This document shows positions 13,601-42,782 of a stretch of DNA of 55,278 nt, piece by piece. The stretch's first letter is position 1; each line of letters begins with the position of its first letter. A program made the position numbers and the translations under genes. The notes under the pieces were generated by a model, which worked only from the letters and a program-made list of their open reading frames with translations, made no database searches and had not been told where the DNA came from. This stretch comes from Vitrella brassicaformis CCMP3155 (taxonomy: Eukaryota > Protista > Chromerida): assembly GCA_001179505.1 (NCBI GenBank), contig CDMY01000540.1, positions 1 through 55,278 on the forward strand, written 5' to 3'.

Positions 13601-15445
13601 GCTATGCTGTGCTGTGCTGTGCCTCTTCTACAGGCCCGTCTTCGTTGTTTTGTTGACGGTTTGGAGCGGCTGCAGGCCCACTATGAGAACGAGGGACTCG
13701 ATGGGGATGAGGACGCCATGAAGCACAAACTAGAAGAGGTCCAGACAGACAGACAGACAGACAGGCAGGTTGCAAGGCAGGTCGGACACACAAAGCACAC
13801 ACCGTTCGTTCCTTTGCTCACTTTTTGTTTGTTTGCTGGGTGTGTCACCCAACCAACCAACGGCATAAATAATGAACGGCACACACACAGGTGCGGGCAC
13901 TGCAGCGTCACCTGACGTGCTCTCAGGAACTGCTCACACTCGCGGCCGAAGTCAAAGGCATCAAAGAAGGGTTGCAGGTCAACCTCAGGACACGCTCACC
14001 CCGCCTCGCAGCTCATGTCACCTCGCTGCCTGTCTGCCTGTCAGGGCAACGACCCGCATGCCGACATTTCTGCGGCCATCTCCAGCTACCGCGACCGAAT
14101 CAACGCCGCACTTGTTGATATGAAGGAGATCGGAGATATCACCGCCGACGCTGCCCCGGCCGACACGGCCGGCTACGGCCTGGTGAGCAGGTACCACGGC
14201 CTCAGCGGCATCGTCACCCCTGAGCGGGTGCAGGAAATGTGGGACCAGGCCACACGGGACACACCCATTACCACCACCACCACCAGCCAGCCCTCACACC
14301 AGCCGCCCCCCATTCCGTCTGATGGTCGCCGTCGGGTGGCCGAGCGGGTGGCGTCGGCGCCTCCTGCCTGCTGGGAGTGTTTCGTGCGCGGCCTGACGGT
14401 TCTGTGGGGTCTTATCGTGTGCGCTGTCCGGTGGCTGGCGTCGTCTGTGTGCGGTGCTGATGCCACGGGGGCCAAGCTGGCGGCGGCCAACAAGAGCGGC
14501 CGACACGGTGAGTGACCCTCAATGGATGGATGGATGGATGGCTCGTTGATTGTGCTATGTATGTGTTTAGACAATGAGTTGAACCGACAGGATGGCAGGT
14601 GTGGCGAGAGCGCGTCCGCAGAGGAGTGCGGCGAGCCCCCTCCCTCTCCCCTCGTCCACCCAGCCGAGATTCCCGAAACCGATCGGCACAAGCTGCACAA
14701 CCCACCGCCGCCCGAGAAGACCCCCGAGGTCAGCAGCGGGGGACGAGAAGCCGAAGACCCAGACCACCCGCACACGCGCATCACCAGCACCAAGTCGACA
14801 CCATCATTCACGACCCCCCTGCCCATCAAACAACCTCTGCAAACCGCCAGCAAGAGCAGCAGGGTGCCGGCGCCAGCACCAGCAGCACCAGCAGCATCGG
14901 AGACTCGGTTGCTGTCTGCCGTTGACGAGGGGGGCAAGGCTGGCTCGAGCAGGGTGAGGAGGGCAGAGGTGGGTGGTGGTGGCGTGAGGGGCATGTCGTC
15001 GTGTGAGGAGCGGCTGTACGCCAAGTGGTACGAGTCCGACCTCCTCCCTTACAGCTGGGCACAGATGGAGAGGTAAGTAGGTACGATGGATGCATGGATG
15101 GATGCGTGGGTGGGCCGCTTCCCTTATGTCAATGCATTCAATGCCTGGTTGTTTGTGTGTGTGTGTGCCGTGTGTATGGTGTTCAGTTTCTACGTGACGG
15201 GGCCATTGGTGTGGCGTGCTGACAACCACTTCACCACATCAATCCTGGTGGCATCAGGGTGAGCGACCGAGGCACACACAGACAGACAGACAGACAGGCA
15301 TGCGCCAGACCCTACCACATGGTGCTGGTGTTGGTGCTGGTGGCTCCACTCATTCCCTCCTTCCCTCACTCCTTCCTTCAGGGTGCTGCTTGGGCTTTAC
15401 ATGATGGAGTGCCTCTACGCCGAGCCGCAGCCCATCAGACTCTGA
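10688..15445 (+). CDS. Multi-exon TPR-repeat protein with acidic/low-complexity and coiled-coil regions; spans gap 12959-13258
   Basis: Spliced exons give AERWYQRGCFANAIESYERA and CYAHLGVCYLKRAQFMDAYEAACEALQLDPYNRIALYARG (TPR). In-phase exons continue after the gap to TGA at 15443-15445. Continuity across the gap is inferred. Confidence 0.68.
12959..13258. other. Assembly gap (300 N)
   Basis: Run of N inside an intron (GT donor at 12957). Confidence 1.
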
Positions 15446-15781
15446 CTGAACTCACTTGGACTCACTTGCCCTGAAATGCTCGCTCGGTTGTTTCGAGCTA
15501 GCCATTTCTGAGACGTCTGTCGAGTCATTTCTGAGATATGATTCCTCATTCCTTTCGGTTCCGTGAGAGGCTGTGTGAGCAGATCAGAGGGGCAGCGGGG
15601 TCGGGTCTCGTCTGTGCAGCGATTATTTCTCGGTTGTGTATGGGTTGCGTGTCGTCACTGTCGTGTCGTGATGTGTGAAATAAGTAGGTATGGTCGCGCA
15701 CTTCCCCGGCCGGCTGTCCAGTGGTGTGCAGTGTGTGGATGGATGGATGGATGGATGGAAGTGCCTTCATTGACACACTGC

Positions 15782-16617
15782 TCATAAGCTCGCCGGTGTC
15801 TGTGTCCGTCGGTGTCTTACGTCTAATGATACGATGTGAATAAAGCCAGATAGACTCGGCATACATCAATCCACACACCCAGTCACCCAGCACCCAGCAG
15901 AGGGAACAGCTCTCCCAGAACGAACCGAGTAGCCTGCTCGTAGGGTGCAAACCAGCCCCCCTTATCAACACTCGCACGGCACACTTCAATCGCACACCCA
16001 CCCTCGCACACCTCACTGTATCTACTGGAAACCCATGCCTCGAGAGCATGTGCGTCACCTTCCCGTCCCAATATGCGCGCTCTGCAGCCACTTGCTTCCT
16101 GAGCAGCGAATCTCGCTCCTGGTCCTGCCACTTCAGCACCTGTAGCAGCTGCTCGCTACGCTCCTGCAAGAACTTTGGCAGCTCCTTGTCTCGCTCGTCT
16201 AATACCTGCACGAACTTCTGCAGCAGCTGCTCGATCAGCTGCTCGTCACGCTTCTGTAGCAGCTCACTGATGACATCCCGCAGTTCGTTTGCCTTGTCGG
16301 GGTCGATGGCCCTCGCCAGCTTCATCGCCGCTGATCGACAACACACACAGATGGGAGCGTGAGCGATGCCGGCGGCTGTTTAGAGTCATTGTACCGTCTT
16401 CGTAACTTTGGTCAGCCGAGGGGGTGGCTTCGCCGCTTGAGGTCTCCGCAAAGAGGCGGCCCAATGGCACTGACGAGGCCTGAGGGAGAGAGAGAAGGAA
16501 GCGGTGGATCAATGGCAAACCAACAAACGACACACGCCCATCTGTCTCGTGTGTGCCCACCGGCGGTGAATGGGAGGGCGTCACCGACAGCGGCGTCTGA
16601 AAACACAGAGTGGCCAT
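15782..16617 (-). CDS. Hypothetical coiled-coil protein, multi-exon; 3' end uncertain
   Basis: MATLCFQT..SPP|ASSVPL..YED|AAMKLARAIDPDKANELRDVISELLQKRDEQLIEQLLQKF.. join in phase. Heptad-like E/Q/L pattern. Confidence 0.5.
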
Positions 16618-17392
16618 GACAGGTCGGAGGCTGTGTTGTGTTGTGTTGTGCTGTGTTGTGTTGTGAGCCGTGTACCAGGTCCTAGCACAGACGAGCCACA
16701 CAGCCGGGACGCACCTGCACACAAGCCCACACACGATTCACAGCGAGCCTCCGAAGTCCGCCCCTTTGTGCCGTACCTGAGCCGCCGCTACGAGTCGCCG
16801 GCGGCCGAAGAGGGACGAAGAGCGCCATATGGTCTGCGGACAAGACACACACCGAACCCACAGGTGGGATGCAGCCGATGCAGCCAGCCTTCTTGTGGCT
16901 CGGTCGGTGCCTGCCCTGCCGTGCCCACTGACTGACAGCACACCTGTGCTGTGTGCGTGGCCGACCACCAGAGAGCAGAGAAGCAGCGATAACACAGCGA
17001 CGGCCAAACAGATTATCTGCTCTGTGGATCTCCGATTCGGGAGGAAGCCAGCCGGGAGGAGGGGAGCGGTTTTGTCGATTGCTCGGTGGGTGAATCGGGG
17101 ATGGGTTCGCGGAGGGGAAGAGATGATAAGGCTGGGGATTTGGCGAATGAATTCGTTTGATCTGCAAGGACGCCAAGTTGATGTGATCACACCTGTGACT
17201 CCATCGTACCCCTTTTTCTTCTCCTTTTTTTCCGATGTTTTTTGCGAGCTCAGGTGCGACGCATTGCGAGCTTTTGAGCAAACCCAAAGTTGCGAAGAGA
17301 CCGTGATTATGAGATGAAGATAGATGCCACACAGCCTTGTCGTATCCCCATGTATCGTCGCTGTTAGCGCGGGCGGCGAGTGAGTGAGGATC

Positions 17393-18312
17393 ATGGCGAC
17401 GTCGTCGAGCCAGGACTTCCCGGCGGTCATAGAGTTCCAGGTGCGTAACTTCTGGCGCCTGGCCAAGAACCAGAACGATGTCGAGAGCCCGCAGATAGGC
17501 CACTGCCGAGGCTTCCACTATCGGTAACCTTACCACACACTCAAACTCACGCACGAGGGGAGGAGGGCGGACGGAGGGAGGACATCACACAGGGAGGCAA
17601 GCCAGCACACCAGACAGCGTGTGACGCGACGAGTGGTCGTGTCGCTCTCTGAGAGGGAGCGGGGTGGTGTACCGTATTGTGTTTGTTGTCGGTGTGACTA
17701 CTGACGGCTGGGTGTCTTGTGCGTGCGCGCACGTGTGTGCGTTGTGTGGCGGTGAGTGTCTCATGTATGTGGGTATGGTTGTGTGTGGCTGCATGCAGGT
17801 TGCTGATTCACCCGCGCGGCACCGCCGGAACGGACAGTGAGTGCTCACACCTGTCCGTTTTCCTCGAAGCCGTCCGCCAGGACTGGTACACACACAGAGA
17901 GAGGGAGAGGGCGGTGGTACTCGGGAGGGATGGGAACAGACAGGTCGATTTGTGTTGTGTGGCGTGTGTGCGGCTGACCCACCAGGTATCCTGACGACTG
18001 GGTGTTCCCTAATGTGCGTTTTGAGCTGACGGTGGTCAACTTCAAGGACCCAAAGCAGTCCGTCACATCATGGGCACACTGGAGCTTCTCAAACGGTACG
18101 GTATACACATACATGTCGTGTGTCTGACACATACCCGCCCAGAGAGAATGGATGGATGCAGTCAGCGACGCACGTACACGTCTTCCTCTCTGGGTGTGGT
18201 GTCAGATGCGACGAGTCGTGGTTGGCAGAAGATGGTGTCGCACAGCCGTCTGACGCGGCAGGCGGGTTTCCTGGACGAGGACGGCACCGTGCTCATCAAG
18301 GGCAAGGCCGAG
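17393..18312 (+). other. MATH/TRAF domain (exons 1-4 of the giant gene)
   Basis: IEFQVRNFWRL..ESPQIG..YRLLIHPRGT..HLSVFLE..FELTVVN..HWSFSNDATSRGWQKMV..GFLDEDGTVLI matches the MATH consensus. Confidence 0.88.
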
Positions 18313-21300
18313 CCTCCCTACCAGACCCTCTGGTCGCGCCTCCCCAGGTACCGCCCCCGGGCCTTCTTCGAGACCATCCCGCCCCTCCCACTCACCACCA
18401 CAGCCGCCGCACAGGCTGCCAAACACGACCACAGGGGTCGCGACGGCCTCGGCGGCCAGCACGACCTCGACGCCGCCCAGCGCGCCAGTGTGTCTGCCCT
18501 TCACACGGCGCTGCACACCGACTACCTGACGGTCGTGCTGCACCTCCTCTTCCACATCAAGGAGTTCCGGCGGGAGATCTTCCTGTGGAAGAGCGAAGGA
18601 GGCGCCGACGCGCCGCCCAACGGCCCCCCGTCGCGCGACTCGCCCCTCATCGACTCGCTGCAGGAGCTGTTCGCCCAGCTCCAGACGGCCCCTTTGATGG
18701 GGACGTCATTCCGGCGTCCGGGGAAGGGCCACCAGCGGCCGTCGATGCCGCCTGTGTCGGGGGTGTCGTCGAGGCTGAGCGGCTTCATGGGCATGAACGT
18801 TGTCGACATTCACGACCTGCCCTCCACCAAGAAGATTCTCCAGGTACGTCATGGCTGCCAACAGCCGACGGACCGACACAGCGAGGATGACGGGCGATGC
18901 TCATTCCATCATCCATCCATCCATGTCTGTCATGTGTCTGTCATGTTGACAGGCGCTGACTTTGAGCTCGCCCGATGCGGTTGATTTGGAGGACCCGCTG
19001 GCGAGGATCCACCAGATGCTTTTCGGCAGCCTGCAGAAGGAGGCGTCGGGCACTGCCATTCGCGGCAACAACATGGCCATCACACTAGAGGCGACCAGCC
19101 TGGACAACACCTGCAGACTCCTCTTCTCGCACAACATCGAACAGGACAAGTAAGGCGGGTGTCTGTCTGGCGTCACTCGGCCAGCCAGAGAGGACAGACA
19201 GGACACTAGCAAATGGAACACACAAGTGATGTCTGTTGGTTGATCTGTGTGCTGTGTGTGTGCTTCATTCATTCAGGGACGATGCGGGTGACTATTCGAC
19301 GTGTTTCCTCCGTGCCCGTCACGCCCACTCGATGCCCAAGGCCCTGGAGCCGTCCCACCGCAAGCTGCGTCGCTTCCCAGAGGTGCTCTTCATCTACCTC
19401 GCGCCCGTGCGGCAGTGCAAGAAGGGCGAGCTCTTCGACGTCCCTCTGCGGATGGACCTGGCCTCTCTGCTCGAGGTAGAAGGGGGTGGCGGTCACCACC
19501 CCTCCAACAAGGCCGACCTGGGTGGCGGGGGCGGGGGCGACATGAGCAAGGGCAACAGGGACAAGGACAGGGCCAGGAAGAAACTCAGACGCAAACTCAA
19601 GATGAAGAGAAACAAAAAGAACAAAGGTCAGTCAGCCTGGCAGTCAGTCAGTCACTCAACTCGTCCGAGTAGCCTGTCCGTCCGTGTACTGTCCGTTGTG
19701 TTGTGTTGGTGGCTTTCTCTTCCTGTGCAGACGTTGAGGATGCCGATGGCGACGAGTCGGACCTGTCTGACGAGGAGATCCCCCTCTCCGACGACGGCAC
19801 CGACGGCGCCACGGCGCGGCCGTCCACTGCCGCCCAGAAGCCGACCGAGAAGTGGTACTCGCTGTACGGTGTGATCATCCGGGAGGGTGGTGACCCCGCG
19901 AGCACCACCGACCAGCGGCACTACCTGCTGCTGCGTCCCGAGGAGGAGGGGCCGTGGTATCGCATCGCCGACGACCGTGTGGAAAAGCTGACGCCCCGTG
20001 TGGACTTCACTGAGTGGAAGTGCCACCGGGACTTCTTCTGCGCCGGAGGGGTGTACGTCAGTGAGGACTACATCGACTCAATCAGTGCCGGGGAGGTCGA
20101 CATCGACACGGACCTCAAGTCGCTCAACCCCAGGTAGGTACCGGCCACCCACACATCCATCCATCCATCCAGCCGTGCACCGAAAGTGAGAAGCAGCATG
20201 TCTGTTCTTGTGCTCTTGTCGCGTATGGATGCAGGCTGTGGAAGGCCACGCTGGATCAGCTGGATGTGGACGACCCGACGGGCGACGAGCCATCTGCCGC
20301 CCCGGCCCGCGAGGCCTCCCGCGCCCCCCGCGACGCCGATGACGTCCTGACAGCCGACGACCACGCTCGGTACACGGAGCCCCTGGCGCAGGCCGTGAGA
20401 CACAACGACCTTAAGGGGGTACGGTCGGTCCTCACGCGCGTCATCATCGAGCGCATCGCCATCGCCAACGCGCGCAGCTCCGACGGGCTGGGCGGGGGCG
20501 ACAGAGGGCTGCTTGGCCTGGACCCCTTCTATGACCTCGATGAGCTCAACGCCCGGTTGGACCCCTCCGTGACCTCTCTGCTCGAGCACATCCGCACCAT
20601 CAAGAGGGACGTGGACGACTTCCTCAAGCGGGGCCGCACGTGTGGCGTGGATGACGCCTCCACCGATGCAGGGACGGCACATGAAGCGGACGGCGTGAGC
20701 GAGCCACCGCCCGAGGTGACCCCCACCCCGTCCACCCACACGCCCTCATCCCCAGACCGCCAGAGACGGAAAGACGGCCGCAGAGCCCCACACCCCGCCC
20801 CACACATACCATCAGCAGCCAGGGCAGCCAAGGCGGCCGGGGCGCCCGACACGGCCACTGCGCCCGAGGAGGAAATGCCCATTCCCGCGTCCTGGGACGA
20901 GCAGATCGACTCGCGCATGTGCGACCTCTACAATGCGGCCAAGGACTGCTTCGAGAAGGCCGTCGAGGCCGCGGCGGGGTTGGGTGGCGACAGGGGGGGC
21001 TTCACGTGGGGCGGGGTGGAGAAGTTCATGTCTCTGCGGAAGCTGGGTCCTTTGCCGAGTGCGGTCGAGATGAAGAATGCCATCGTCAAGTGCGGCGAGG
21101 CGCTGCCCGACAAGATCACCAACCGTGAGCTCATCACCCGCTACCTTCAGACCCTCCTCCCCGGCGCGTCGGCGGCATACCTCGAGAAGATGATCGCATC
21201 CACGTCACCATCGCTGCCACGCACCGCCAGGGGCATGCCACCCGACCATTCAGAGTCCACGTCGGCCGACCCAGGCAAGGCGGGCAAGAAGGGCGCCGGC

Positions 21301-24300
21301 AAGGCCAAGGGCGACGCCAAGCAGCGGCAGAGCGTCGACCCGGCTGCGGACGCGACAGACAGTCTGCTAGCGGACATCCTGTGTGCATCCATGTGTCTGG
21401 CCATCGAGTGGGAGGTCGACGCCTACCTCAAGAAGGCCGCACTGAGGGAAGAGGGCGGCGATGACCAGGTCGAGGACGTCTACCTGACCCCGCCCCAGCC
21501 ACACAGACCTTTCTACGGCGCTGGTGTGGGGTCGGCCCTGCAGCCCCTCGCCACGGAGGCCTTCTATGGCAACGAGTCGGGCTCCCCGCGGCCCCTCTTC
21601 CCTCCCCCATCATCACACGACCCCATCAGTGGCGGCGGGGTGGGCCTGAGTGCGTCAGCCACGCCGCGGGAGGGCGACCTGGCGGCTCGATTCACTGAGG
21701 ACAAGATCGACCAGCGAGTGGCCCACAACTGCGACCCAGACGTGTTCGTGCCGCCACCCACCAGCAGTGCCAGTGCTAGTGCGAGTGCGGCTGATGTGTC
21801 GTNNNNNNNNNNNNNNNNNNNNNNNNNNNNNNNNNNNNNNNNNNNNNNNNNNNNNNNNNNNNNNNNNNNNNNNNNNNNNNNNNNNNNNNNNNNNNNNNNN
21901 NNNNNNNNNNNNNNNNNNNNNNNNNNNNNNNNNNNNNNNNNNNNNNNNNNNNNNNNNNNNNNNNNNNNNNNNNNNNNNNNNNNNNNNNNNNNNNNNNNNN
22001 NNNNNNNNNNNNNNNNNNNNNNNNNNNNNNNNNNNNNNNNNNNNNNNNNNNNNNNNNNNNNNNNNNNNNNNNNNNNNNNNNNNNNNNNNNNNNNNNNNNN
22101 NNACCTTAAGGGGGTACGGTCGGTCCTCACGCGCGTCATCATCGAGCGCATCGCCATCGCCAACGCGCGCAGCTCCGACGGGCTGGGCGGGGGCGACAGA
22201 GGGCTGCTTGGCCTGGACCCCTTCTATGACCTCGATGAGCTCAACGCCCGGTTGGACCCCTCCGTGACCTCTCTGCTCGAGCACATCCGCACCATCAAGA
22301 GGGACGTGGACGACTTCCTCAAGCGGGGCCGCACGTGTGGCGTGGATGACGCCTCCACCGATGCAGGGACGGCACATGAAGCGGACGGCGTGAGCGAGCC
22401 ACCGCCCGAGGTGACCCCCACCCCGTCCACCCACACGCCCTCATCCCCAGACCGCCAGAGACGGAAAGACGGCCGCAGAGCCCCACACCCCGCCCCACAC
22501 ATACCATCAGCAGCCAGGGCAGCCAAGGCGGCCGGGGCGCCCGACACGGCCACTGCGCCCGAGGAGGAAATGCCCATTCCCGCGTCCTGGGACGAGCAGA
22601 TCGACTCGCGCATGTGCGACCTCTACAATGCGGCCAAGGACTGCTTCGAGAAGGCCGTCGAGGCCGCGGCGGGGTTGGGTGGCGACAGGGGGGGCTTCAC
22701 GTGGGGCGGGGTGGAGAAGTTCATGTCTCTGCGGAAGCTGGGTCCTTTGCCGAGTGCGGTCGAGATGAAGAATGCCATCGTCAAGTGCGGCGAGGCGCTG
22801 CCCGACAAGATCACCAACCGTGAGCTCATCACCCGCTACCTTCAGACCCTCCTCCCCGGCGCGTCGGCCGCATACCTCGAGAAGATGATCGCATCCACAT
22901 CGCCATCGCTGCCACGCACCGCCAGGGGCATGCCACCTGACCATTCAGAGCCCACGTCGGCCGACCCAGGCAGAGCGGGCAAGAAGGGCGCCGGCAAGGC
23001 CAAGGGCGGCGCCAAGCAGCGGCAGAACGTCGACCCGGCCGCGGACGCGACTGACGGGTCTGACTGTCTGCTGGCGGACATCCTGTGTGCGTCCATGTGT
23101 CTGGCCATCGAGTGGGAGGTCGACGCCTACCTCAAGGAGGCCGCACTGAGGGAGGAGGGCGGCGACGACCAGGTCGAGGACGTCTACCTCACCCCACCTC
23201 AGCCACACAGACCGTTCTATGGGGCTGGCGTCGGGTCGGCCCTGCAGCCCCTCGACACGGAGGCCTTCTATGGCAACGAGTCGGGCTCCCCGCGGCCCCC
23301 CTTCCCTCCCCCATCATCACACGACCCCATCAATGGCGGCGGGGTGGGCCTGAGTGCCTCAGCCACGCCGCGGGAGGGCGACCTGGCCGCCCGTTTCACG
23401 GAGGACAAGATCGACCAGCGAGTGGCCCACAACTGCGACCCAGACGTGTTTGTGCCCCCACCCGCCAGCAGTGCCAGTGCTAGTGCGAGTGCGGCTGATG
23501 TGTCGTCAATCGTGACGCCGCCGGTGTTGCGTGGCAAGGACGACAAGAACAGGGTGGTGCTCAGCCTGGTCTTCAACTCGGACCTCGACGGGCTGGAGGG
23601 GTTCGCATCTGAGGACCAGCTGCCCGACTGGAGACTCCTTGCCGTCAAGTAAGTCGCGAGCCACCCGCCCTTGCCCTTGGAGAGACAGACAGACAAACAG
23701 GCAGATTGAAGCTCAGGTCGCCCCACCGAACGAACGCGTCTTGCTTGTGTTGTTCTTTTGTGTGGTTGTGTGCAGGCGGAATCTGACGGTGTCCAAGCTG
23801 TACAGCGGGTTCAAGCGGCTGTTGCTCCAGACGGGTGCCCTCAACACATCCGACGCGACCGACTCTGGTGGTCCCGGGCAGCGCAGCAGCGCTCTGGTGG
23901 CGCTCAACGACCACACGGCTGGTGGGTGGCAGTCGATGCTGCTGTACGCCCTCAAGGCCGACAACGACCCATCGAAGAAGGGCAGCCGTCGGCGGTTCGC
24001 CTACATGCAGCCCCGCGAGCACCTCGACAACTTCCTGGACGACAAGCAGCGCAAGCTCGACGAGCGTGAGCCCGACCTGGTGGTCCTCGTCATGCTGCCG
24101 CCCGTCATGCAGCCCGAGCCATTCATCGCACCAAGTCAGTGCACTCATTAATTAATGAGCCTCCCCTCTCCCCCATGTCGACACTGCGGATGCATGTGTG
24201 TGATGTTGGTTTGGTGTCCGTCGTGTCTGTCTGTGTGTCAGATCCAACGGCGTCTGCAAAGGACTTCAAGGATTTCGAGGACTCGTGGACGCTGCTGGTG

Positions 24301-25309
24301 CTCAAGTGGTTCGCCGTGGAGACCATGAACCTGTCGTGTATGGGGGCCGTGGTGTGCGACGTGCGCCAGTCGCTACAGTACTACGTCAGGGAATACCTCA
24401 TCCCAAAGTACGTACACACGCACGCACTTGGGGCTGGCTGACATACATGTGGCAACACTGATGGCAGCCACACACATGCCCACATCACATGGCTGACATA
24501 TCATCTGTCCGTCTGCTGGTTGGTTGTCTGTCTGTCTGTCAACAGGTTGAAGCGGCGTCGGATGTTGGCCTTCAACGTGGACATGGACAAACTCAAGTAA
24601 GCCCCCACTCCCTCCCTCCCTCCCACNNNNNNNNNNNNNNNNNNNNNNNNNNNNNNNNNNNNNNNNNNNNNNNNNNNNNNNNNNNNNNNNNNNNNNNNNN
24701 NNNNNNNNNNNNNNNNNNNNNNNNNNNNNNNNNNNNNNNNNNNNNNNNNNNNNNNNNNNNNNNNNNNNNNNNNNNNNNNNNNNNNNNNNNNNNNNNNNNN
24801 NNNNNNNNNNNNNNNNNNNNNNNNNNNNNNNNNNNNNNNNNNNNNNNNNNNNNNNNNNNNNNNNNNNNNNNNNNNNNNNNNNNNNNNNNNNNNNNNNNNN
24901 NNNNNNNNNNNNNNNNNNNNNNNNNNCCCTCCCACTCCCTCCCTCCCTCCCTCCCTCTCTCCGCCTGCTCTCATGTGCGCGTGTGTGATTGTGTGCCTGT
25001 GTGCCTGCCTCTCCTCTCCTCTCTTTCAGGGTATATGAGGAGTTGACCGTTCGTGCGGTGTCTCCCATCCGTCGGCTCAACGCGTCCATCAAGAAGATCA
25101 ACCGCAAGACGGGCGACGTCATCATCGTCCAGATCGGCAAGCACCCCATGACCGACAACGACGCAGCCGCCCTCCCCATGGCCAACCCCTCACCAGCCCT
25201 CCAAAGCCCAGCCGCCGCCGCCGCCGGCAGCGGCCACGTCAACATTGAGGACATCACTGACGAGAACGAGGACCACCAGGGCGGCGGAGGGGGCGGTGGC
25301 GCTGGTGGT

Positions 25310-25341
<32 letters not shown>

Positions 25342-28300
25342 GAAGAAGGACAAGGCGAAAGACAAGAAGAAGAACAAGGCGGGCAAGAAGCCAGCGATGG
25401 CGGCCATCCCGGCCAACACCCGTGGCAGTCTGGTCCAGAGGATGCGTGCCGAGAATGCCGAGCAGGAGCGGCGTCGCAAGGAGGAGGAGGAGGTTCAGAG
25501 GCGGGAGGACGAGGCCAACCGCAAGAAGGAGGAGGAGGCCAAGAAGAAGCGCGAGGAGGAACGCAAGAAGGAGGAGGCGCGCCAGAAGGCCGAGCAGGAG
25601 GAGAACCGCAAAAAGGAGGACGACCGCAAACGCCTGGAGCAGGAGGCTCTGGACAAGGAGCGGGACAAAGAGCGCGACAGGGAGGCCAAGAAGGCGCAGA
25701 AGGCCCAGAAAGACGCCAAGGCCGACACGGCAGCGGCCAAGGGCCGCAAGGGGGCCGCCGCCACGCCGGCCGACGCTGCCACCAAGAAGGACGGCAAGGA
25801 GCTCAGCAAGAAGGGCTCCCGAGACGACAATGACAAGGCAGCCAAGGTGCCCGACAGTCGTGCTGGCGGTGGCGCCGGCAAGGGCAAGGACGGCAAGGAG
25901 GCTTCTGCGGCCGCATCCAGTCGCGTGACGCTCCCCGACCGCCCCGCAGACAAGCCCCCAGCCGGTGGCAGACGGCAGCCCGTCCTGCACGGCGCCGCGG
26001 GAGCTTCGCCCTCTGGTCTGGGTGGCGAGACGTCACCCGTCCGCATCAGCCAGCCCCTGGTGGTCGTCGACACCGAGAAGATGCGACAGAACGAGCAGAG
26101 GGAGCGTGAGGCCGAGCGGGAGCGAGAGCGGCTGGAGCGTGGCGAGCGGGAGGCCCCTCATGGCATCACCATCACCTCGGCAGCAAGACCCATTCGGCCC
26201 CCGGCGTCCGAGGACGCACACCCACCAGCCCCACCACCCGAGGAGGCCCGACGGGCGGACAAGAAGAAGAAAGACGAGCCTCCACCACCACCGCCCCAAT
26301 CCGAGCAGAAGCCACGGCCAGAGAGGGAGGCCCACCCCGAGAGCCACCTGACACCAGAGGACAGCCGCAGCCGCAGGGATGGCACGGAGAGCGACGCACC
26401 CGACGCACCCAGCGGGGCAGCATCAGAGAGGGCCGAGAGTGAGAGCCTGGCTGGTGAGGGAGCGGGGGGCGTCGCTGGTGAGAAGGAGAAGGCCAAGCCG
26501 CGGGACCCGGTCGAGTCGCTGCCCGAGGAGCTACAGACACTGCTGGTGGCGTACAGGCAGCAGGACCACCCCGACGCCGCACGGCTTGCCAGAGACGTAC
26601 TCGACGTGGTAAGCAGTGGGTGCATGATGGGATGGGACAACGCACGGAAGGCAACACAACACCATCCATCGACTCTTGCTTCCGCTGCTGTCTGTCTGGT
26701 CGATCAGATCCTGACCCGCATGGCCCCCAATCCCCTGCCCCCCTCGCCCATCGCCGAAGAGTCCCCCGACGTGCATCCCTCCGACCGACACGAGAGTGCC
26801 GCCTTGGCCACGGCGGTGGAGGTCATCCAGCGGGAGATCCTGTCGGACGACAACCAGCGCAAGAGCTTCACCTCCACATTCAAGGCCGACGTCGAGCACA
26901 CCATCGTCGACGTCGACCGCAGCGGCATGCTAGGAGACCCTAAGAAGCGCCTCGACGGCGGGGCTGCTGCCGCTGCTGGGGGCTCGGCAACGACCGCGCC
27001 CGCCACTTTAGTGGAGAGGATTATCCGTTTGGGCGGCCCCAACGTGGTGCGTGGCGGCATGCAGGAGGTGCAGCAGGCCTTGGAGGCCAGGCGGCGGGCG
27101 GCAGTCGAGCTGGCGTGCCTCTTGTACGACAAGGGCGGCAACGCCGCCATCATCAACCGCCGTGCGGTGGAGGGCGACATCCACCAGAAGCTCATCACGG
27201 CCATCACACTGTCCGAGGGCAGCGAGAAGCGGTTCCCCTCCAGCGAGGCGGCCGTGGTGGACATGCTGGAGAGGGTCGAGAAGGTCAACACGCTCAGCTA
27301 CTTCATCCGGCTGCTGGGGAGCAAGCATGTCGCCAAGGTGACCGACACGCAGTCGGGCCGTCGCCTGGTCGTCAAGAACGCCAACAACCTCCTGGCCCTC
27401 TACCAGCGTGGCTGGAAGGTCCTCAGGACCCACCTCACCGCATACACCGCACCACCGGCTCTCTTCGAGCAGTACGGCTCGCCACTCAACGCCGCCGTCG
27501 GGGTGGCCAACAGAGCCCTTGAGGGCCTGCTGGGCTGCCTCGCCGGCGCCAACCGACACCCCTTCGCTCTCATCAACGAGGACGTGGCGCGGCAGCTGCC
27601 GCAGTCAGAGCCATCCGGCCCGCCTCCCCCGCCCCCTCCCCCAGGCTCATCGCACCTGGGCGGCCTCAGCAGTGGTGGCCCGTCATCCGACGCATCCTTC
27701 GGTCAGGTGCTGGGGGTGTCCAAGGGGTCGTCCCCGTCAGGATACACAGTGGACGAGTGGCACGTGTTGCGTGAGGATTTGTGGACCGAGGACCACTGGC
27801 GTCGGATGGAGGGGTCGGACGCCGCTGGGGGGGCTGGGGGGAAACTGCACGTGGTGCCCAAGCGGAAGGAGGCACCCAAGATCGTCTGGGAGGGCAACGA
27901 CTGCATGGTATGTGGGCAGGGATGGAGGGACATCACTGACTTAATGGCTATAGCAGCCAGCTACACAGACAGACATCGATGTGTTGTTGTGTGGTGGATT
28001 GGATGTGGTGCAGGTGGTGGAGAAGCCGGCCTTCTGGCGATCTCTTGCGAGCGGCAGCACGCTGTCTCCCCTGGTGTGCAGCGACAAGGAGTCGGCGTCC
28101 ACCCACATCGAGGGGCTCATCATCAGCCAGTGCCCCGAGCACCTCCTCTCCTTCTTCATGTGCTCACACTTCCAGATATTCACCACCGAGTGGGCCGTCG
28201 TCGGCCCGCCACTGCCCATGGACGTGTCGGGCCTGCTCATCATCGCCAGGCGCACCAAGTGCAAGGACATGCTCGCGAGGCAGCTGCCCTCCGGCTCGGG

Positions 28301-31300
28301 AGCCGCGGCGCCCTCTCTGCCCACCACAGAGAAGCCGATAGTGCGGGAGTACATCGCCTTGTGCCACGAGCGCATGAAGGAGCGTGAGGTGACGGTCAAC
28401 GAGCCGGTCATCCTCAATCTCAAGGGGCCGGGGACAAACTCGGCGGCCCCGTCCACGCCCGAGGAGATCCAAAACGCACGGTGCACCCTTCACATGAGGG
28501 TCAACGTCATGGGCTACTACCACCGAGCGGCAGGGGGAACCAGGGGCCGCCGTCTGCCCACTGGGTCTGCCGGCATCCCGCCGCCCGCCGGGGCCGAGGA
28601 GTTCACTCTCGTCAAGTGCACTGTCTTCTCGGGGTTCCTGCAGCAAATCAGGTGAGTAGTGAGCCAGAGACGCGAGACGCATGTGTACCATACCTGCCTC
28701 TCTGACGGACGGATTGATGACATCTTTCTTGCTGTCAGATCGAAGTTCGCTGAGTATGGTCACCCGCTAGTGTGCGACGCTCGGATGTTGCAGCCGATGA
28801 GTCTGGCGAGCGACCGTTCGTGGTGCCCCCGGCTGTTCCTGCACGCCAGCCTCCTGGAATTCGAGGCGCCCGATTCCACCAACAGGGGGCAGAGGGTCAC
28901 TAAATCATCCCCCCTCCCACAGGACCTACACTTGGTATGTATGCGCACCGGACCCTCACACTGACAGCTGTCCCTTGAAACGATGTCGTTGTCGTTTGTC
29001 GGTGTCTGCAGACGATTCGTCAGCTGGACCAGGCCCCAAGGATGTTGGATGAGGCGGCCCAGTCGGGCCTGCAGCAGCCAGTCCCCACACCCGTCTCCAC
29101 CTCCTCCCGCCCCACACCCACTGAGGCAAGGTCACCATCGCCCCCCGTGGGAGGCCCAGCACAGCCCCCCACCGGCATCCTCCCCCCACCACTGGGCGGC
29201 GAGGGCGGTGCCACTTCACCCAGCAACCGCACAAGCCAGCAGGGGTGGGCGCAGGGCTGGCAGGAGGCAGGCGCCAGCTGGCCCGCTGACGGCGTCTTCA
29301 GGCCAATCAGACCCACGGGAGCCGCCGGCGTCATCGGCCCATCGTCCTCACAGGCCGGGCAGCCCATATCTGCGCAGAGTCTGTCGGCCATTGGCATCGC
29401 GGCGGTTGGTGGTCAGAAGCTGCAGCCCCAGGCTCCCCCGCCCACCCAGTCACCCTCGCAGCAGCGTGCCGCCCCTCCCAGGCCCCCATCCGCCGGGCCC
29501 AACGACGAGGCCAGTATCCTGGGACCGATCCCCTCACTCCAAGCAGCTGCTGCCGGCGACCCTGAGGGCCCATGGCGCGTCACGTCGGCGCCCAGCGAAA
29601 GCTTCACCCCCCTGCCCAAGTCGGCCGTGCAGGCGCACTTCCCGGTGCCATACAACGCAGGCGCGCCGCCCACTGCATACAGCGCCCAGGGTCGGCCTTT
29701 CGTGGGCGGCGGCACGCCGTCACAGGTGCCGGAGCAGCGGAAGGTGCCCAGCCCGGCGCCCTCACCGATGGCCCCGCCGCAGGCCCCGCCCGACGGCCCG
29801 TCCATCAGCACCTCCCAGAGCCTGGGTTCCAACCTTTCCGAGCAGGGCGCCCCCTTCCAGCCCCACCTGCAGGCCTTCAGCTTCCCTCTGCGGGTCGGCA
29901 GTGCCACCGGTCCCCCCGGCACCCCCAGCATCACCGAGGGGCCCTCGCAGCCATCGCCACAGGCGCTGCCGTCTGACTATGCGTCATCGGATGTCTCACA
30001 GCAGCAGCAGCGACCCTTTCTGCCCTTCTCGGCTGCCAGTGACACGGGCAGCAAGGGGGGGCCGTCTGCGAGCCCCACGGCCTCCCTCAGCGGCATGGCC
30101 ACCACCCCCGGAGGCCGCCCCGCATTCCCACCATCGGCCGACGTCGGCAGGCGCAACTTCTCGGTCGGCCCCACCCCGCCGATCCGGCCGTCTGGCGAGG
30201 ACGCCAAGGTCATCCCGGCGCCCAACCCGATGGACGTCGACGACGTGCCGCACGACGCCAGCACATACAGCGGGCCAGCGGGGGAGGGCGGGCCGTCACT
30301 CATCGACAAGGCCGAGCAGAGGGGCACCCAGACAGAGCGCAGCAAAAGGGCCGAGAAGGAGTTCAAAGTCAAAAAGGCCAACGGCGCATCCGATCGGTAT
30401 TTCCTGGGCCCCCTCGGCGAGAACTTCCTGCAGGGCGTCTTCTCGCACTCCATCGTGGCCAATGACGAGCCGGTGGGCGACCTGCTCGACGGCGGCTGGG
30501 GCGACCCCTCCAGCCACGGCAGCTCCCCCTCTGTGCGCCAACTGGTGTGGAGCTTCACCGTTCCCAAGGGCGACCAGGACTTTGTGGTTGAAGGGGCGGA
30601 CAAGGCCAAGTGCCACGCCTTCGGGCAGGCCTACTCGAACCTCTCCACGGCCAGGCGGTCGCTGGGCGGTCGCGAGGAGACGGCCGCCGAGCAGCGGAGT
30701 GCGGTGCTGAAGCGCATCAGGACTGCCATGGACCTGCAGCACTCTCTCTGGAAGAAGGTCAAGCACATCATCAAACAGTATTGCCGCGCCTGGGGCGAGC
30801 GCATCGAGCTCGACGGTGGGGCGTCGGCCTCGAGTGCGAGCGCCAGCTCGGCCAGCGAGGCGGGCGCCGCCGGACCAGGCAAGTACCTCTTCAGGGCCAG
30901 GATCGAGCTCAAGGAGCTGCAGCAACAGTCACCCGAGCGGTCCCTCTCACTGGCCTCGGGTGAGGCCCTCCCGCCGCCCGACGAGAAGCAGCCGACCACG
31001 CCCTACGCCTCACGCCAGGGGCGCGGTGAGGTGGGGAATGTGTGCATGTCGTCGTCCCTGCCGGCGTCGTCAGTGCTGAGCCGAACCTCCACCCCACGTG
31101 CAGCCGGGGGGGCTGGGGACGCTGCGGCCTGGTACCTGTCGGAGAGACGGACATCCAAATGGGTCTTCGAGTAAGAGAAGCACATCTGGCTCAGGGCTTT
31201 GGACAGACAGACCAATTAATGACGCATGTCGTCTGTCTGTTGTCGTGCTTGTGGCTGCAGGGAGCTGGCCCGCCGCTTCCCGAGTGAGTTTGTGGTGCGC

Positions 31301-31640
31301 ATTATCAAGGCTGGGGAACTTGAGCTCGAGACGGGAGTCATTGAGATCGACGATCTGCTGCCTGAGTAAGGACGGAAGGATGAATGCACTGCACGGCGTC
31401 AAGACGTGCATGATGCGAACGAATCTCTCTGTCTGGCTGTCTGTGTGTTGTGTTGGGTCGGTGTGTGTGTGTGTGCAGGGAGGGAGTTGTGGACGACTTG
31501 CCGGAGCACCAGAGGGAGAAGAAGAAGCACCAGGCGCTCGTGTCGCTTATCGTCGGCATCGCCTGCCAGAGGAAGCGCCTCGGCACCCCCGCACAGAAGC
31601 GCAAGATCAGCAACGTCCCATCCAAGGCCGCTCGGGACCT
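17393..31640 (+). CDS. Giant multidomain protein: MATH + degenerate USP7-like protease + UBL + charged coiled coil + helical region + degenerate RluA-type pseudouridine synthase + P/S/Q-rich IDR + C-terminal domain; 3' end lost in gap
   Basis: ATG 17393. About 20 exons splice GT-AG in phase (e.g. 17393-17523, 17799-17885, then from 17986 and 18206). Domain motifs are listed in the sub-features. Interrupted by gaps at 21803 and 24627; runs into the gap at 31641. Confidence 0.82.
18490..20133 (+). other. USP (peptidase C19)-like domain lacking the catalytic Cys
   Basis: LHTDYLTVVLHLLFHIKEFRREIF aligns ungapped to the USP7 Cys box [43 protein letters not shown] and FDVPLRMDL are present. YSLYGVIIREGG..RHYLLLRP..GPWYRIADDRV is the His-box region. 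Confidence 0.8.
20408..21802 (+). repeat. Copy 1 of a ~1.4-kb duplicated exon segment
   Basis: Matches 22103-23506. The first ~765 bp look identical; the 3' part is diverged and identical to 31941-32562. Confidence 0.95.
21803..22102. other. Assembly gap (300 N) between duplicated copies
   Basis: Run of N. Confidence 1.
22103..23512 (+). repeat. Copy 2 of the duplicated exon segment (the version that continues into the rest of the gene)
   Basis: Runs on in frame into ..SSIVTPPVLRGKDD..LAV(K)|gtaagt. Confidence 0.95.
23776..25140 (+). other. USP7-type ubiquitin-like (UBL) domains
   Basis: LLVLKWFAVETMNLSCMG and VYEELTVRAVSPI..SIKKINRKTGDVIIVQ resemble the USP7 UBL segments LLFLKMYDP..LNYCG and LYEEVKP..DGDIIVFQ. 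Confidence 0.6.
24627..24926. other. Assembly gap (300 N) in a (CCCT)n intron
   Basis: Both flanks are ccctcccactccctccctcc-type repeats. Confidence 1.
27880..28936 (+). other. RluA/RluD-family pseudouridine synthase-like domain lacking the catalytic Asp
   Basis: IVWEGNDCM|VVEKPA (motif I); PPLPMDVSGLLIIAR vs HRLDxDTSGLLLFAK (motif II); REYIALC; FTLVKCTVFSGFLQQI|RSKFAEYGHPLVCD (motif III); RLFLHASLLEF; SPLPQDL. Confidence 0.82.
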
Positions 31641-31940
31641 NNNNNNNNNNNNNNNNNNNNNNNNNNNNNNNNNNNNNNNNNNNNNNNNNNNNNNNNNNNN
31701 NNNNNNNNNNNNNNNNNNNNNNNNNNNNNNNNNNNNNNNNNNNNNNNNNNNNNNNNNNNNNNNNNNNNNNNNNNNNNNNNNNNNNNNNNNNNNNNNNNNN
31801 NNNNNNNNNNNNNNNNNNNNNNNNNNNNNNNNNNNNNNNNNNNNNNNNNNNNNNNNNNNNNNNNNNNNNNNNNNNNNNNNNNNNNNNNNNNNNNNNNNNN
31901 NNNNNNNNNNNNNNNNNNNNNNNNNNNNNNNNNNNNNNNN
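31641..31940. other. Assembly gap (300 N)
   Basis: Run of N hiding the giant gene's 3' end. Confidence 1.
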
Positions 31941-32572
31941 CTCGAGAAGATGATCGCATCCACGTCACCATCGCTGCCACGCACCGCCAGGGGCATGCCA
32001 CCCGACCATTCAGAGTCCACGTCGGCCGACCCAGGCAAGGCGGGCAAGAAGGGCGCCGGCAAGGCCAAGGGCGACGCCAAGCAGCGGCAGAGCGTCGACC
32101 CGGCTGCGGACGCGACAGACAGTCTGCTAGCGGACATCCTGTGTGCATCCATGTGTCTGGCCATCGAGTGGGAGGTCGACGCCTACCTCAAGAAGGCCGC
32201 ACTGAGGGAAGAGGGCGGCGATGACCAGGTCGAGGACGTCTACCTGACCCCGCCCCAGCCACACAGACCTTTCTACGGCGCTGGTGTGGGGTCGGCCCTG
32301 CAGCCCCTCGCCACGGAGGCCTTCTATGGCAACGAGTCGGGCTCCCCGCGGCCCCTCTTCCCTCCCCCATCATCACACGACCCCATCAGTGGCGGCGGGG
32401 TGGGCCTGAGTGCGTCAGCCACGCCGCGGGAGGGCGACCTGGCGGCTCGATTCACTGAGGACAAGATCGACCAGCGAGTGGCCCACAACTGCGACCCAGA
32501 CGTGTTCGTGCCGCCACCCACCAGCAGTGCCAGTGCTAGTGCGAGTGCGGCTGATGTGTCGTCAATCGTGAC
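31941..32572 (+). repeat. Copy 3 (copy-1 version) of the duplicated exon segment; truncated and joined to unrelated sequence
   Basis: Identical to 21181-21802. Follows copy 2 to TCAATCGTGAC, then diverges. Frame stops at 32666. Confidence 0.9.
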
Positions 32573-32772
32573 AGCCGCGCGCGTGTCTGTCCAGGTCTTT
32601 TTTGTTTTTTGGTTGACGAAGTGTGCATGCACTTGGCTACAAAACTGCGTGATGGCACGCCGTTGAGCGGACGTCGTTTTGCGCTTTCACATCCTCTTTC
32701 TTTTTCGTCCGTGATGTTCACAAAAAGAATGGACGTTATGGAGTTGATGTGCGTGTATGTTCAAATGGACGT

Positions 32773-35700
32773 TCATGTCTCATTCGAGTCATGTCTGCAC
32801 GAATGAAGCGTATGTAAAGGCTGAAAAAGTACAGATCAATTCGATCATCAAAGACGAGGCCGCGAAGTCACCGTTCGACTTTCCGCTGCTTTTCCCTCTT
32901 CTTCACCCGCTCGAGAACTGCAAAAAGAGCAAGAGGTCAGCATTTCAGCAGAGCAACAATTGAGGTGTCTAGCGGCAAGTACCGCCCTTGACTCTTCTGT
33001 CGAGTGTATCCTTGAGCTCTTGGCATGATATACGCGACTTCAGCCTGCATGCATACAGAACCATCATACAGGCCGAGAACCATGCATGCCATAATGCTGC
33101 TTACTTCTCTGCCTCCGCGAGGTGCTGTCGCACCAACGCACAGTCCTTGGCGTTGCAAATTGCAAACTCGAGATGGTAGCAAGGCAGCAACCAGTTCATC
33201 TAAGGGAAAGAAGCAGGCATTGATGGTGTGCGTGCTGTCTCCTCAAATTGGTCTCTCGTACCGTCGCGTGTCTCGCATGTGTGGACAGCGTGTCAAGACA
33301 CTTATCCAACTGCGCCAACTGTTGCGACGCCACACCAATACCCTGAATCCAGCACCTCTTGTACGCCACACCTGCAGGCCCCCCAAATTGGATGATTTAT
33401 CAATTGGTGCGGTGCCACCTATCGTTCGTACTCAGGAGCAGCTGGCACAAAAGCCACTTGTCGTATGTGCTGCCTTGAGTCGGTGAAGAATCTGCAGGGG
33501 GGCGCGCTTGCCCGATCTGCAGATCGAGCAAAAAGGAAGATCATCGATGGACGAGACGACTTGCCTGCCTGCTACCGGTGTGAGCATGTCGATGACTTTC
33601 AGCAGCACGTCGGCGTCTTCTCGGCCAAGGCTGTTCAAGGCCCTGCCATGGTACAGCGCCTCCACAAAGGCCAGCTGTGCATCCTCACGCCTATGTCCAG
33701 AAAGGCCGAGATGACATGAGTGGACATATCTAGCTGCCTTACTCAGGTCGAGAACCGAGCCGTTGGGCCAGTGAGAGCTCCCACAGGGCCCTCGGACGCT
33801 GCAGAGAGTTGGAGGCAGTGGTCGAGCAGGCCAGACAGACGATAAGGCACATGCAACACGATGCAAAAACATGTTGCATAGTCAATGATCAATGACCTCG
33901 AGGTATGCGTTGTACACTTCCTCTCCTTCATCCACAAATCCGCTCAGCACAGACGCGAGGAAGAGCCAGAAGCCAAAGGCCGACGACTTGATCCCTCCAC
34001 TGGGGACTGCAGGAGGGAACACACAGATATGCGAAGAGGCAGGGCAGCGTGGCAGTCATCTCACTCACCGCCGAGAGCTTTCCGCACTTCATCGAACTGC
34101 ATGGTGACGAAGAAAGGCCATGTCGCCCGGAAGGCCCTGACCTGGGCCATCTCCAGAGTGAAGTACTTGCCCTTCTCGCCACCCCACAGCCAGTGCTCCA
34201 GAGAGACAGTGCAGCTGCAGATTCGATGCAAGTCCCCAACGTCACCTTTTCTCCCTCATGAGAACGTTTGGCACCTGTCCGAGTGTGTCTTGACGCCGAA
34301 GTTGACGGCAGCGGCCCTGGCTCCTTTGTACTCGCTCTTCATCAACCTGCGGTATTTGGACAGTAGATATTCATTCCTTTGAGGCCCGTCTTCTCTTTAC
34401 CTGGCGTGGAACTGCAAGTATTTTTTGATGTATGGTGGCACCCTGGCAAGAAGATCAGCATCCTGGGAAAAAAGACAGATATGAAGGCAGATGCACCAGG
34501 CGGCCGCTGTCATGTGCAGCTGACCGCATCCAGCTCGAACTCAGCGGCGTTTCTGGCGTACTCGACGACCAAAGGTGCCATCGTGACATGGCGGCGGAGC
34601 GGCACTTCTGTCGAGTCTGAATCGACCTGTGAGAGACACACACAGAGAGAGAGAGAGAGAGTCTCAATCAAGGTCAGAGGGACAGCTGATGAAGGTTGTG
34701 TCTTAACTTCTGAAGCAACGCCTTGCCTTTGTCGAAATCCATCGGCAGGCCTCTGAAGCCACGCAGGGGAAACACGGCCGTCGTCAAGAATGGACCTGTG
34801 CGGGAAAAAGCGATGAGAGACATTGGAAGACGCAAGCCAGATCTGGCTCATTTTCACTGACCCAACAACGGTGAAGACACCGCGAGAGCGCGCGTCGTGA
34901 CATTCGCCGCACCTATGGAATGCATGGTCATGTGTGAATGGATGGCCGCTTGGTATCCGTTACCCACCCTCAAGGAAGTCCATGCCGGTCTGCAGATCTG
35001 CTCGCATCTGCATCCAGTCGCTCCAGTCGCGGCTTGAGAGCTCCTCGGCGCGGAACAAAGAGAGATCTGACGCAGACCTGCAGCAACAAATGGCGCACAA
35101 AGGCAGGAATGGCGTGTCTCTTCTCCCCAGCTCAGCTCACGTGAGTAGGTCTCTTGCCCTATCGAAGGTGTTGAGTGTCCTCGCCGCGGCGGTGGCCAGT
35201 GCTGTTGGCAACACACATGCAGTGCCGTCCTTGTGAATGGTCAACAAGCTTACATGCGATCAAATGCCATTCGGAAATGCCTGACGCATTAGGAAAGGCA
35301 ACCCAGCTGTCGACAACTTGTGAGTACAGTGTCGCTTGCCCAAGCACCATCTCACACACAACAAGCACCTGGAAGGCAACGAGATGGATGGTAGTCTGTC
35401 CATTTGGCTGCACAAGCTCTCACCTGGTCGGCCTCCACTTTCTACCGCTGGGCAATGCCCAGCCACCAGTGGCGTCGACACGCCAACTTCCACTGAATGA
35501 TAACACATGACAAAACAGTCGAAGGGATGCTTGGGTGTCTGCCAGAGTGGCCTCACCTGTTCGGCCAGCTGCAGTGACATGCCCAGCAGGTCTTTCGCAC
35601 GAGTCATGCGTGCCTTGTCAAAGTTATTGAATGCGCTGAGGAGCGTGCGAAAAGGGACAGTCGGAGAGAAAATTCGGTTGTTTGATTTGTTTCTTTGCCT

Positions 35701-37083
35701 ACATGATGATGCTGAGCTCTGCCTGAAGGAAGCATGAGACGGGATCGGTGCAGTCGGATGGCCAAGTGGGGTCACAGGTGGGGTTGTGCCAGAACTGCTC
35801 ATAGGCTGACGAGTCCATTACAAAGACAGAAAAGAAGAGACAATACGCTTGGTCATTCTTTTGATGAGTTACTACTGTTACCCTTCCTCGTCGCCTTGTA
35901 CGTCTCTGGGCTCCAGCCGGGCGCGCAAGGCCGGCCCAGGGCAGCTGGCGGCTCGCCTCTTGATGATCCATGGCCATGGCTGGCTGCATATCTGAAAGAA
36001 ATGCGACCACATGCAAAAATGACAGGAACCGAGAAAACAATCGCATTGTACCCGACACGAGGACGAGCTGCATCGGCTGTGTCTCAAGAGCTTCCGCAGA
36101 CTGCTCTTCAGCCCCTGAAGACAGGCACATGCAGAGGAATGAGAATAACATGTTGCTTTCCCACCTGTGTTGCTGGCTGACAGTGAGGCAGCCCCGCCGT
36201 CTCCCTCGTCCCTCTCTGAGGGCATCTCACACAGAAGCGCTCCCCCCGCACACACCTCTGAACAAGACAGGAAAACTCCGCCGACACGCCGACTATACTG
36301 AGGGTGGCTACCTACCTGTCCCTGCACCCACGGGAGTGAGGCCGACAGCCGGTCTCTCCATGCTGACGACAGACGGGTTGAAGGGCAGAGGAGGGCTCCA
36401 AGAGGGCTCTGAAATACAAAGACGAAATGTGATGGATAACAGTTTGCATTTGGAGGGGCGCTGACCTTCGTCGCCCTCGGTTGGAGGCAGCTCCTGCTTG
36501 GCTGGCGAGTCTGTCACATTCAAGGCAAACACGAGGATATGGCGGGTTGTCGAAAGAGGCTCACTGACCTCAGTTACCGTGGATTTGCGATTCTTCCTTC
36601 GATACGACATCACCGGAGGCATCAGAGCCCTCTTCTTGGCCACGTGACGGCGGATCTACCACAGACACCACCAATGGAGAAAGACAGAATGACAAGGAGG
36701 TGAGGTGGGTGTTCGCTGTTCAGTCCTGTTCACCTCCTTGACCGTCCTCTTTGGGCACATGACGCGCGTCTTGCACAGACGGACTCGCCTCTGCGTCCGA
36801 AAAAAAAAGCAAACAGACGAGTTTTCACATCTTTTGGCGTCGGTTGATGGGCCAACCTTCTTCGACGTCGTTTGTTGGTTGGCCACGCGAGGACGAGCCG
36901 CATTTCGGCAGACACGTCATCAGACCTGAAAGTACACACACAATGGACGCCATTGATACAATCCTTTCCGTTTGTTGCCCTTTCTTTCTCACTCTTCAAC
37001 TCACTCGGCTTCCTTTTGCCGTCACTATTGCTCGGCAGGCAGCCAAGCGGGCAGCGTCGAGGCTTTGGCAGCGAAGACGACAT
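32773..37083 (-). CDS. Hypothetical protein with many short exons (>18)
   Basis: MSSSLPKP.. start at 37083. Consecutive phase-matched exons (DARHVPKEDG, DPPSRGQEEG, DSPAKQELP, VDSDSTEVPL, DADLLARVPPYIKKYLQFHAR|LMKSEYK, CTVSLEHWLWGGEKG, EREDAQLAFVEALYHG, LERVKKREKQ). Stop ~32773. Some central junctions are unresolved. Confidence 0.6.
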
Positions 37084-40678: not shown

Positions 40679-40719
40679 CAGAGAATGAACAGCCCAAGTC
40701 CTGGCGCGAAAACCCGGGC

Positions 40720-42534: not shown

Positions 42535-42782
42535 AGAAGTTGCTGCATGCAATCAGCGGCAGCGATCGATCCATGTTCGCGTGCAGGTGGGTGGGTGTAT
42601 CAGTTTGCCTTTTTTCAGTGGGAAGGCGTGTAGTTCCATGCCTCTTGTCCGAGGGAAGGACAGAAGATGAGACATTGTGCTCGTGCGGACTCCTCGTCTT
42701 TTTCCTGGAGTGTCGTGGCTGCTTTTTTGGAAGGTCGTAGGTGGATATGATATATGATTGTATGTATGTTTGTATGCCGGGT

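Follow-up and report, generated by a model that had tools for sequence, protein, structure and literature searches.

A probable single gene of Vitrella brassicaformis joins a USP7-like and an RluA-like domain, both with replaced catalytic residues

A 55,278-nucleotide stretch of the genome of the chromerid Vitrella brassicaformis CCMP3155, an alga with kinship to malaria parasites (contig CDMY01000540.1, positions 1 to 55,278 of the forward strand; hereafter the window) raises the question of whether the region that starts at position 17393 encodes one giant protein in which two different enzyme folds have been fused after each lost its catalytic residues. The initial annotation, made from the letters alone, had placed in one frame a MATH domain, a deubiquitinase-like domain of the USP type, ubiquitin-like (UBL) domains and a pseudouridine synthase (PUS) domain of the RluA type. 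Our analysis suggests that the region is probably a single intron-rich, transcribed gene that fuses a scaffold derived from USP7 to an RluA-type fold. The encoded protein would start with a MATH-like N-terminus, followed by the USP fold, a lineage-specific linker of about 570 residues, the USP7-type UBL1 and UBL2, a Lys/Glu-rich disordered region, a helical region, the RluA-type fold and a long Pro/Gly-rich tail.

The frame can be followed from the ATG at 17393 through an 18-exon model on the forward strand in which all donors are GT, all acceptors are AG and the phases are consistent, with no stop within any exon or split codon across 17 junctions; lengths, phases, split codons and stops were checked exon by exon. 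The coding sequence amounts to 11,982 bases (3,993 codons), with the overlap at the assembly gap at 21803 (described below) counted once. The seven 5' junctions, and likewise the 3' continuation beyond exon 16, were placed by inspection of the sequence only. Eight GT..AG junctions are present in spliced contigs of runs X1 and X6, which belong to two studies: after cut-shift adjustment these are 23648|23776, 24134|24242, 24407|24546, 24596|25030, 26608|26708, 27907|28014, 28651|28739 and 28934|29012. The X1 and X6 contigs skip exact GT..AG intervals and are therefore derived from RNA (runs X2 and X3 are DNA), and they establish the transcription of the 3' two thirds of the gene.

A single X6 contig passes from 24033 through exon 10 (24242-24407) and the 51-base exon 11 (24546-24596) to 25030 and beyond. 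The junction 24596|25030 spans the assembly gap at 24627-24926, which consequently lies inside intron 11, at a (CCCT)n microsatellite whose flanks nearly overlap; being spliced, the same junction places the USP7-type UBL exons and the RluA-type exons on one transcript. Its presence in both X1 and X6 refutes the existence of separate genes on the two sides of 24627, a possibility that the initial annotation had left standing. An apparent joint that goes back from 25010 to 24523 was rejected as a low-complexity match from elsewhere, with 36 letters that are absent from the window. The 99-base intron 26609-26707 is in frame and free of stops, such that its retention would insert 33 residues with the frame intact; the spliced contigs of both runs remove it.

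Towards the 3' end, the initial annotation had closed the gene at 31640, which proves too early. The stop at 31172 is bypassed by a GTAAGA donor at 31171 that leads from exon 16 (29012-31170) to a predicted exon 17 of 105 bases (31261-31365, with canonical sites and consistent phase) and from there to a predicted exon 18 that begins at 31479 and reaches the gap at 31640; this path was traced by eye and its phase was checked. An independent DNA contig, L001, matches the window from 25308 to 31640 at 100% and then carries the frame into the gap at 31641 with 2,769 more bases, so that this gap (31641-31940) hides at least 2.8 kb. Exon 18 runs for 630 codons (L001:6172-8065), mostly in the hidden sequence. 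The hidden part (L001:6334-9102) does not reach the next contig, though the gap is written as 300 N, and it contains an open frame of 640 codons as well as another of 294 codons (L001:8065-8949).

The identity of the domains was explored through Pfam and PDB searches made exon by exon. The Pfam UCH profile matches exon 4 (18206-18843; E=0.017, profile positions 8-60) and exon 7 (19731-20133; E=5.8e-5, profile positions 188-241); the two matches are collinear and sum to 38.5 bits, each alone being below the gathering score of 23.9. Similarly, USP7_ICP0_bdg matches the UBL2-like exon 10 (E=0.059, positions 59-93) and the first 56 residues of exon 12 (25030-26608; E=0.15, positions 112-149), with a sum of 25 bits against a gathering score of 27, and PseudoU_synth_2 matches exon 14 (28014-28651; E=0.0065, profile positions 48-99) at 17.1 bits against a gathering score of 26.8. 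These matches fall in the order and at the positions expected for a USP7-like protein with an RluA-type domain after it. A protein-language search with exon 14 returned only members of PF00849 among its top ten atlas matches (score 0.88), a result to be taken as a lead, short of proof.

The remaining parts of the N-terminal half were recognized by eye, with phases checked and no Pfam match. Exon 1 (17393-17523), with the start codon and a GTAACC donor, would supply the first MATH-like strands; exon 2 (17799-17885), exon 3 (17986-18095) and the beginning of exon 4 would complete the MATH-like region, which is characterized by the motifs VIEFQVRNF..., LLIHPRGT...HLSVFLE (in exon 2), RFELTVVNF and GFLDEDGTVLI as well as by its position. 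Exons 5 (18953-19149) and 6 (19277-19626) appear to form the middle of the USP fold, the latter with a basic insert. The end of exon 8, whose donor at 23648 is seen in the X1 and X6 contigs, would contain the start of UBL1, and exon 9 (23776-24134), both of whose junctions are in spliced contigs, resembles UBL1, a homology read by eye. The spliced-contig junctions likewise bound exons 10 and 11, exon 12, in which the end of UBL2 gives way to the Lys/Glu-rich disordered region, and exon 13 (26708-27907), which comprises the helical region and ends in the putative first PUS strand (IVWEGNDC).

The arrangement of MATH, USP and UBL modules is the architecture of USP7, and the Vitrella gene appears to follow USP7/HAUSP (MATH, C19 USP domain, UBL1-5) in the order of its parts, from the MATH-like region through the Cys and His boxes to the UBL-like exons. 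The USP fold was recovered with its Cys and His boxes, and the catalytic Cys and His are not kept in them. The Cys-box exon gave a weak PDB match to USP25, the sole PDB lead among the exons searched, and in this alignment an Asp stands opposite the nucleophilic Cys (GNTCW in USP25, LHTDY in Vitrella, within LHTDYLTVV of exon 4). In the Pfam-matched stretch of exon 7 (GVIIREGG...RHY...IADDRV), Arg occupies the position of the catalytic His, with the Asp retained, as read by eye. Hence, the contention that the USP active site is dead is upheld, and by the canonical mechanism the domain is almost certainly inactive. Beyond the replacement of these two residues, the Vitrella protein differs from USP7 in having about 570 extra residues between the USP fold and UBL1, in showing only UBL1-2 recognizably, and in adding about 2,900 further residues that include the RluA-type fold.

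For the PUS half, fragments from the tail of exon 13 and from exons 14 and 15 were aligned to Escherichia coli RluA, RluC and RluD. The order of motifs is that of the RluA family (PF00849), namely strand I, xxLxxxxSGLL, a KxY-type motif, GxxxQIR, GHPxxxD and LHA, of which the SGLL, KxY-type, GHP..D and LHA motifs are retained in the Vitrella domain. RluA enzymes require the Asp of HRLD. Under the VHRLDxxTSG motif of the E. coli enzymes aligns the Vitrella segment GPPLPMDVSGLLIIAR (GPPLPMDVSG), in which Pro replaces the catalytic Asp and Pro-Pro replaces the preceding His-Arg, turning HRLD into PPLP. Across the RNA-confirmed junction 28651|28739 between exons 14 and 15 (the latter at 28739-28934, bounded by spliced-contig junctions), the Vitrella sequence reads SGFLQQIR-SKFAEYGHPLVCD opposite TGRTHQIRVH...GHPxxGD, so that GFLQQIR stands in place of GRxHQIR, and it retains GHPLVCD and RLFLHA. 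A 40-residue insert before motif III further distinguishes it from the three E. coli proteins. The alignment thus bears out the proposal that this active site, too, is dead, and loss of activity by the canonical mechanism is very probable. Exon 16, whose acceptor is in the spliced contigs, continues the protein with a Pro-rich disordered region and a more ordered tail of about 250 residues.

The architecture is unusual, yet it has a precedent in a giant protein of a malaria parasite that is already annotated with MATH and PUS. The largest protein of Plasmodium vivax, PVP01_1022500 (11,461 residues), contains pseudouridylate-synthase and MATH domains by CD-Search (PMC10993292), which makes a good lead of the suggestion in the initial annotation that very large apicomplexan proteins annotated as RNA pseudouridylate synthase may be orthologues. 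P. falciparum PF3D7_0511500 bears the same annotation, "RNA pseudouridylate synthase, putative", and a piggyBac mutant with an insertion in its exon is viable, sensitive to heat shock and hyper-gametocyte-forming (PMC5082630, PMC10269797). PVP01_1022500 resembles the Vitrella protein in its very large size and in its PUS and MATH domains, and differs in being three times longer and in having no reported USP or UBL domain. Judging by the published domain list, the Vitrella gene may be an orthologue of the Plasmodium giants, and PVP01_1022500 and PF3D7_0511500 may be orthologues of each other. We found no literature that describes a USP7-like or dead-enzyme nature of these Plasmodium proteins.

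Whether the MATH-USP half belongs to the same gene as the UBL-PUS half depends on the assembly at the gap at 21803. The window has four 300-N gaps (at 12959, 21803, 24627 and 31641), which separate contigs A (13259-21802), B (22103-24626), C (24927-31640) and D (31941 onward). Self-comparison of the window revealed that the gap at 21803-22102 is not a simple one: its flanks overlap, A 20408-21173 being identical to B 22103-22868 at 100% over 766 bases, and no missing sequence is required. The first part of exon 8 (20235-21173), which encodes the linker between the USP fold and UBL1, is accordingly continued on contig B (22103-23648). Past the shared stretch, the 629 bases at the tail of A (21174-21802) show 36 substitutions and one 9-base indel relative to B 22869-23506 (about 94% identity) and are 100% identical to the start of D (31941-32562). 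The match of D to B extends for 17 further bases, beyond which D is unrelated and T-rich; B stays coding. A segment of about 650 bases, equivalent to the 211 codons at the end of the exon 8 linker, is therefore present in two versions, a B-type and a D-type, the latter at 31941-32580 and followed by unrelated DNA with a non-coding look.

The read depth of the two versions is 22.2 and 21, against 19.8 for the single-copy flanks, in one DNA run, and 11.6 and 11.2, against 11.1 for these flanks, in another. Between them, nonsynonymous divergence (dN) is 0.021 and synonymous divergence (dS) is 0.18, giving a dN/dS of 0.12. The single-copy depth of both, together with this ratio, indicates two selected paralogous copies rather than a dead fragment; alleles were rejected as an explanation, given that each version lies at the depth of the single-copy flanks and that dS is 0.18. 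When each exon was compared with the remainder of the window by tblastn, no diverged paralogue appeared beside the D-type copy. The roughly 6 kb that follow this copy (32580-38500) have no long open frame on either strand, a non-coding look that differs from the dense coding to the left.

The strongest rival explanation, which we consider unlikely, builds on these observations and posits two genes: a MATH-pseudoUSP gene that terminates with the D-type copy, its stop lying 35 codons past the point where the copies diverge, and a separate gene for UBL1-2, the disordered region and the pseudo-PUS domain that starts upstream of the B-type copy, the scaffold order being wrong at the gap at 21803. 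It accords with the D-type ending of the contig of exons 1-8, which matches the start of the last contig at 100%, with the single-copy depth and purifying selection of both copies, and with an independent DNA contig, L006, which matches 16636-20496 at 100% and stops there, not bridging the segment. Set against it is the overlap itself: the 766 bases found after exon 7 are also on contig B, and the absence of any difference over these bases, despite a dS of 0.18 between the copies, argues that they are single-copy DNA in both contigs. It follows that one contig took a wrong turn at the repeat, and sequence alone cannot say which. Look-ups of Logan contigs for one that bridges the overlap found none on record. 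The tail of A is probably the wrong extension, and the order A then B, which joins the MATH-USP half to the rest, is favored with good confidence on three grounds: the scaffold places B and C, with the UBL and PUS exons, between A and D; UBLs of the USP7 type are known only from positions after a catalytic domain of the USP7 type; and the Plasmodium protein carries MATH and PUS together.

Several points weigh against the single-gene interpretation and against parts of the domain assignment. The spliced-contig evidence extends from the donor of exon 8 through the acceptor of exon 16, with exons 1-8 and 16-18 outside it. The final letters of the MATH-USP contig are of the D-type, and at its other occurrence the D-type copy gives way to DNA with a non-coding look; as far as the letters go, the MATH-USP gene may end in that copy. 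One X6 contig has the D-type letter at 23333, and the D-type copy may thus be expressed as well. Each Pfam match, taken alone, lies below its gathering score, such that the recovery of the two enzyme families by profile searches, on which the initial annotation had staked its reading, holds weakly: UCH, USP7_ICP0_bdg and PseudoU_synth_2 are collinear and individually subthreshold. MATH has no Pfam or PDB match in any of its four short exons, and PDB sequence searches with the PUS, His-box, UBL and three MATH exons gave no relevant match. Of the single spliced frame proposed at the outset, the phases, the GT..AG boundaries and the collinear USP-, UBL- and RluA-like signals stand, and the MATH assignment lacks a match at the exon level.

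Relatives were similarly elusive. Exon 13 with its flank (26480-27904) gave no match, not even to itself, in an exhaustive search of 1.84 billion representative proteins, and its helical region gave no lead in the protein-language atlas. The linker (20410-21399) and the PUS exon also gave no match in word searches, which cover proteins of 0.55-1.75 times the query length and are therefore blind to giant relatives. Single-sequence AlphaFold models of the PUS exon and the helical region were unusable, with predicted local distance difference test scores (pLDDT) of 30 and 37, respectively.

A second rival explanation, which we judge quite improbable, holds that the RluA-type domain is still active and that the dead USP7 part is its targeting or regulatory module. 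The D of PMDVSG does lie two residues past the lost Asp and could in principle replace it, and the Tyr of the KxY-type motif, GHP..D and LHA are all retained. This Asp is the only route to residual activity, and it lies two residues closer to the Ser-Gly than does the Asp of RluA, RluC and RluD, among which the D-x-x-T/S-S/T-G spacing is constant. Moreover, HRLD also lacks its His and Arg, GRxHQIR lacks its Arg and His, the Pfam score falls far short of those of active enzymes, and the length-limited word search gave no relatives. The idea that the long frame is an assembly artefact or a decaying pseudogene, to which the four gaps, the false overlap and the missing 2.8 kb or more at 31641 of a poor assembly might lend some color, is close to refuted by the independent DNA contigs that match 16636-20496 and 25308-31640 at 100%, by the exact removal of eight introns in spliced contigs of two studies, and by 3,993 codons that remain free of stops across 17 junctions.

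Elsewhere in the window, a direct repeat of about 230 bases with 84.6% identity is present at 40714-40934 and 42777-43013. A long open frame on the forward strand (38991-40265), the start of which resembles a dinucleotide-binding motif (GPAGLSTALMLAKRG), may represent an exon of an FAD-dependent oxidoreductase.

Taken as a single gene, the locus would encode a non-catalytic adaptor, with neither domain catalyzing its ancestral reaction. The half derived from USP7, with the MATH-like region, the pseudo-USP fold and the UBLs, would recognize peptide motifs and perhaps ubiquitin as well. RNA would be the ligand of the pseudo-PUS part, and the disordered regions, which amount to about 1,500 residues, might favor assembly into ribonucleoprotein complexes. 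Such a role is suggested by analogy with PAN2 (USP52) and USP39/Sad1, which contain catalytically dead USP domains inside RNA-processing machines. In these proteins a USP fold devoid of its nucleophile has a structural or binding role beside an RNA-directed activity, as we propose for Vitrella. They are not of the USP7 type and have neither MATH nor USP7 UBLs, unlike the Vitrella gene, and the partner domain of PAN2 is an active exonuclease, whereas the RNA-enzyme domain of the Vitrella protein appears to be dead too. The protein might couple ubiquitination to RNA regulation, as the initial annotation had suggested. To our knowledge, fusions of two different pseudoenzymes are rare.

At the level of the locus, these results serve as a warning about the assembly, which contains a hidden overlap, omits 2.8 kb or more of coding sequence and holds a 211-codon segment in two selected copies. 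As dead USP domains have been recruited twice into RNA machines, in PAN2 and USP39, a third recruitment, of the USP7 type, would extend this pattern. We put forward, tentatively and as less likely than not, that the Vitrella gene is the free-living counterpart of the giant apicomplexan proteins, and that the whole family is a paralogue of USP7 in which both enzymes died early in myzozoan evolution, leaving a conserved adaptor between ubiquitin or peptides and RNA. Should the same sites be dead in the Plasmodium proteins, both the annotation and the interpretation of the mutant phenotypes would change: the enzyme annotation in malaria parasites would be wrong, and the heat-shock and gametocyte phenotypes of P. 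falciparum would reflect the loss of a scaffold, not of RNA modification. Vitrella would also offer a shorter version of the protein, with about 4,000 residues against about 11,000.

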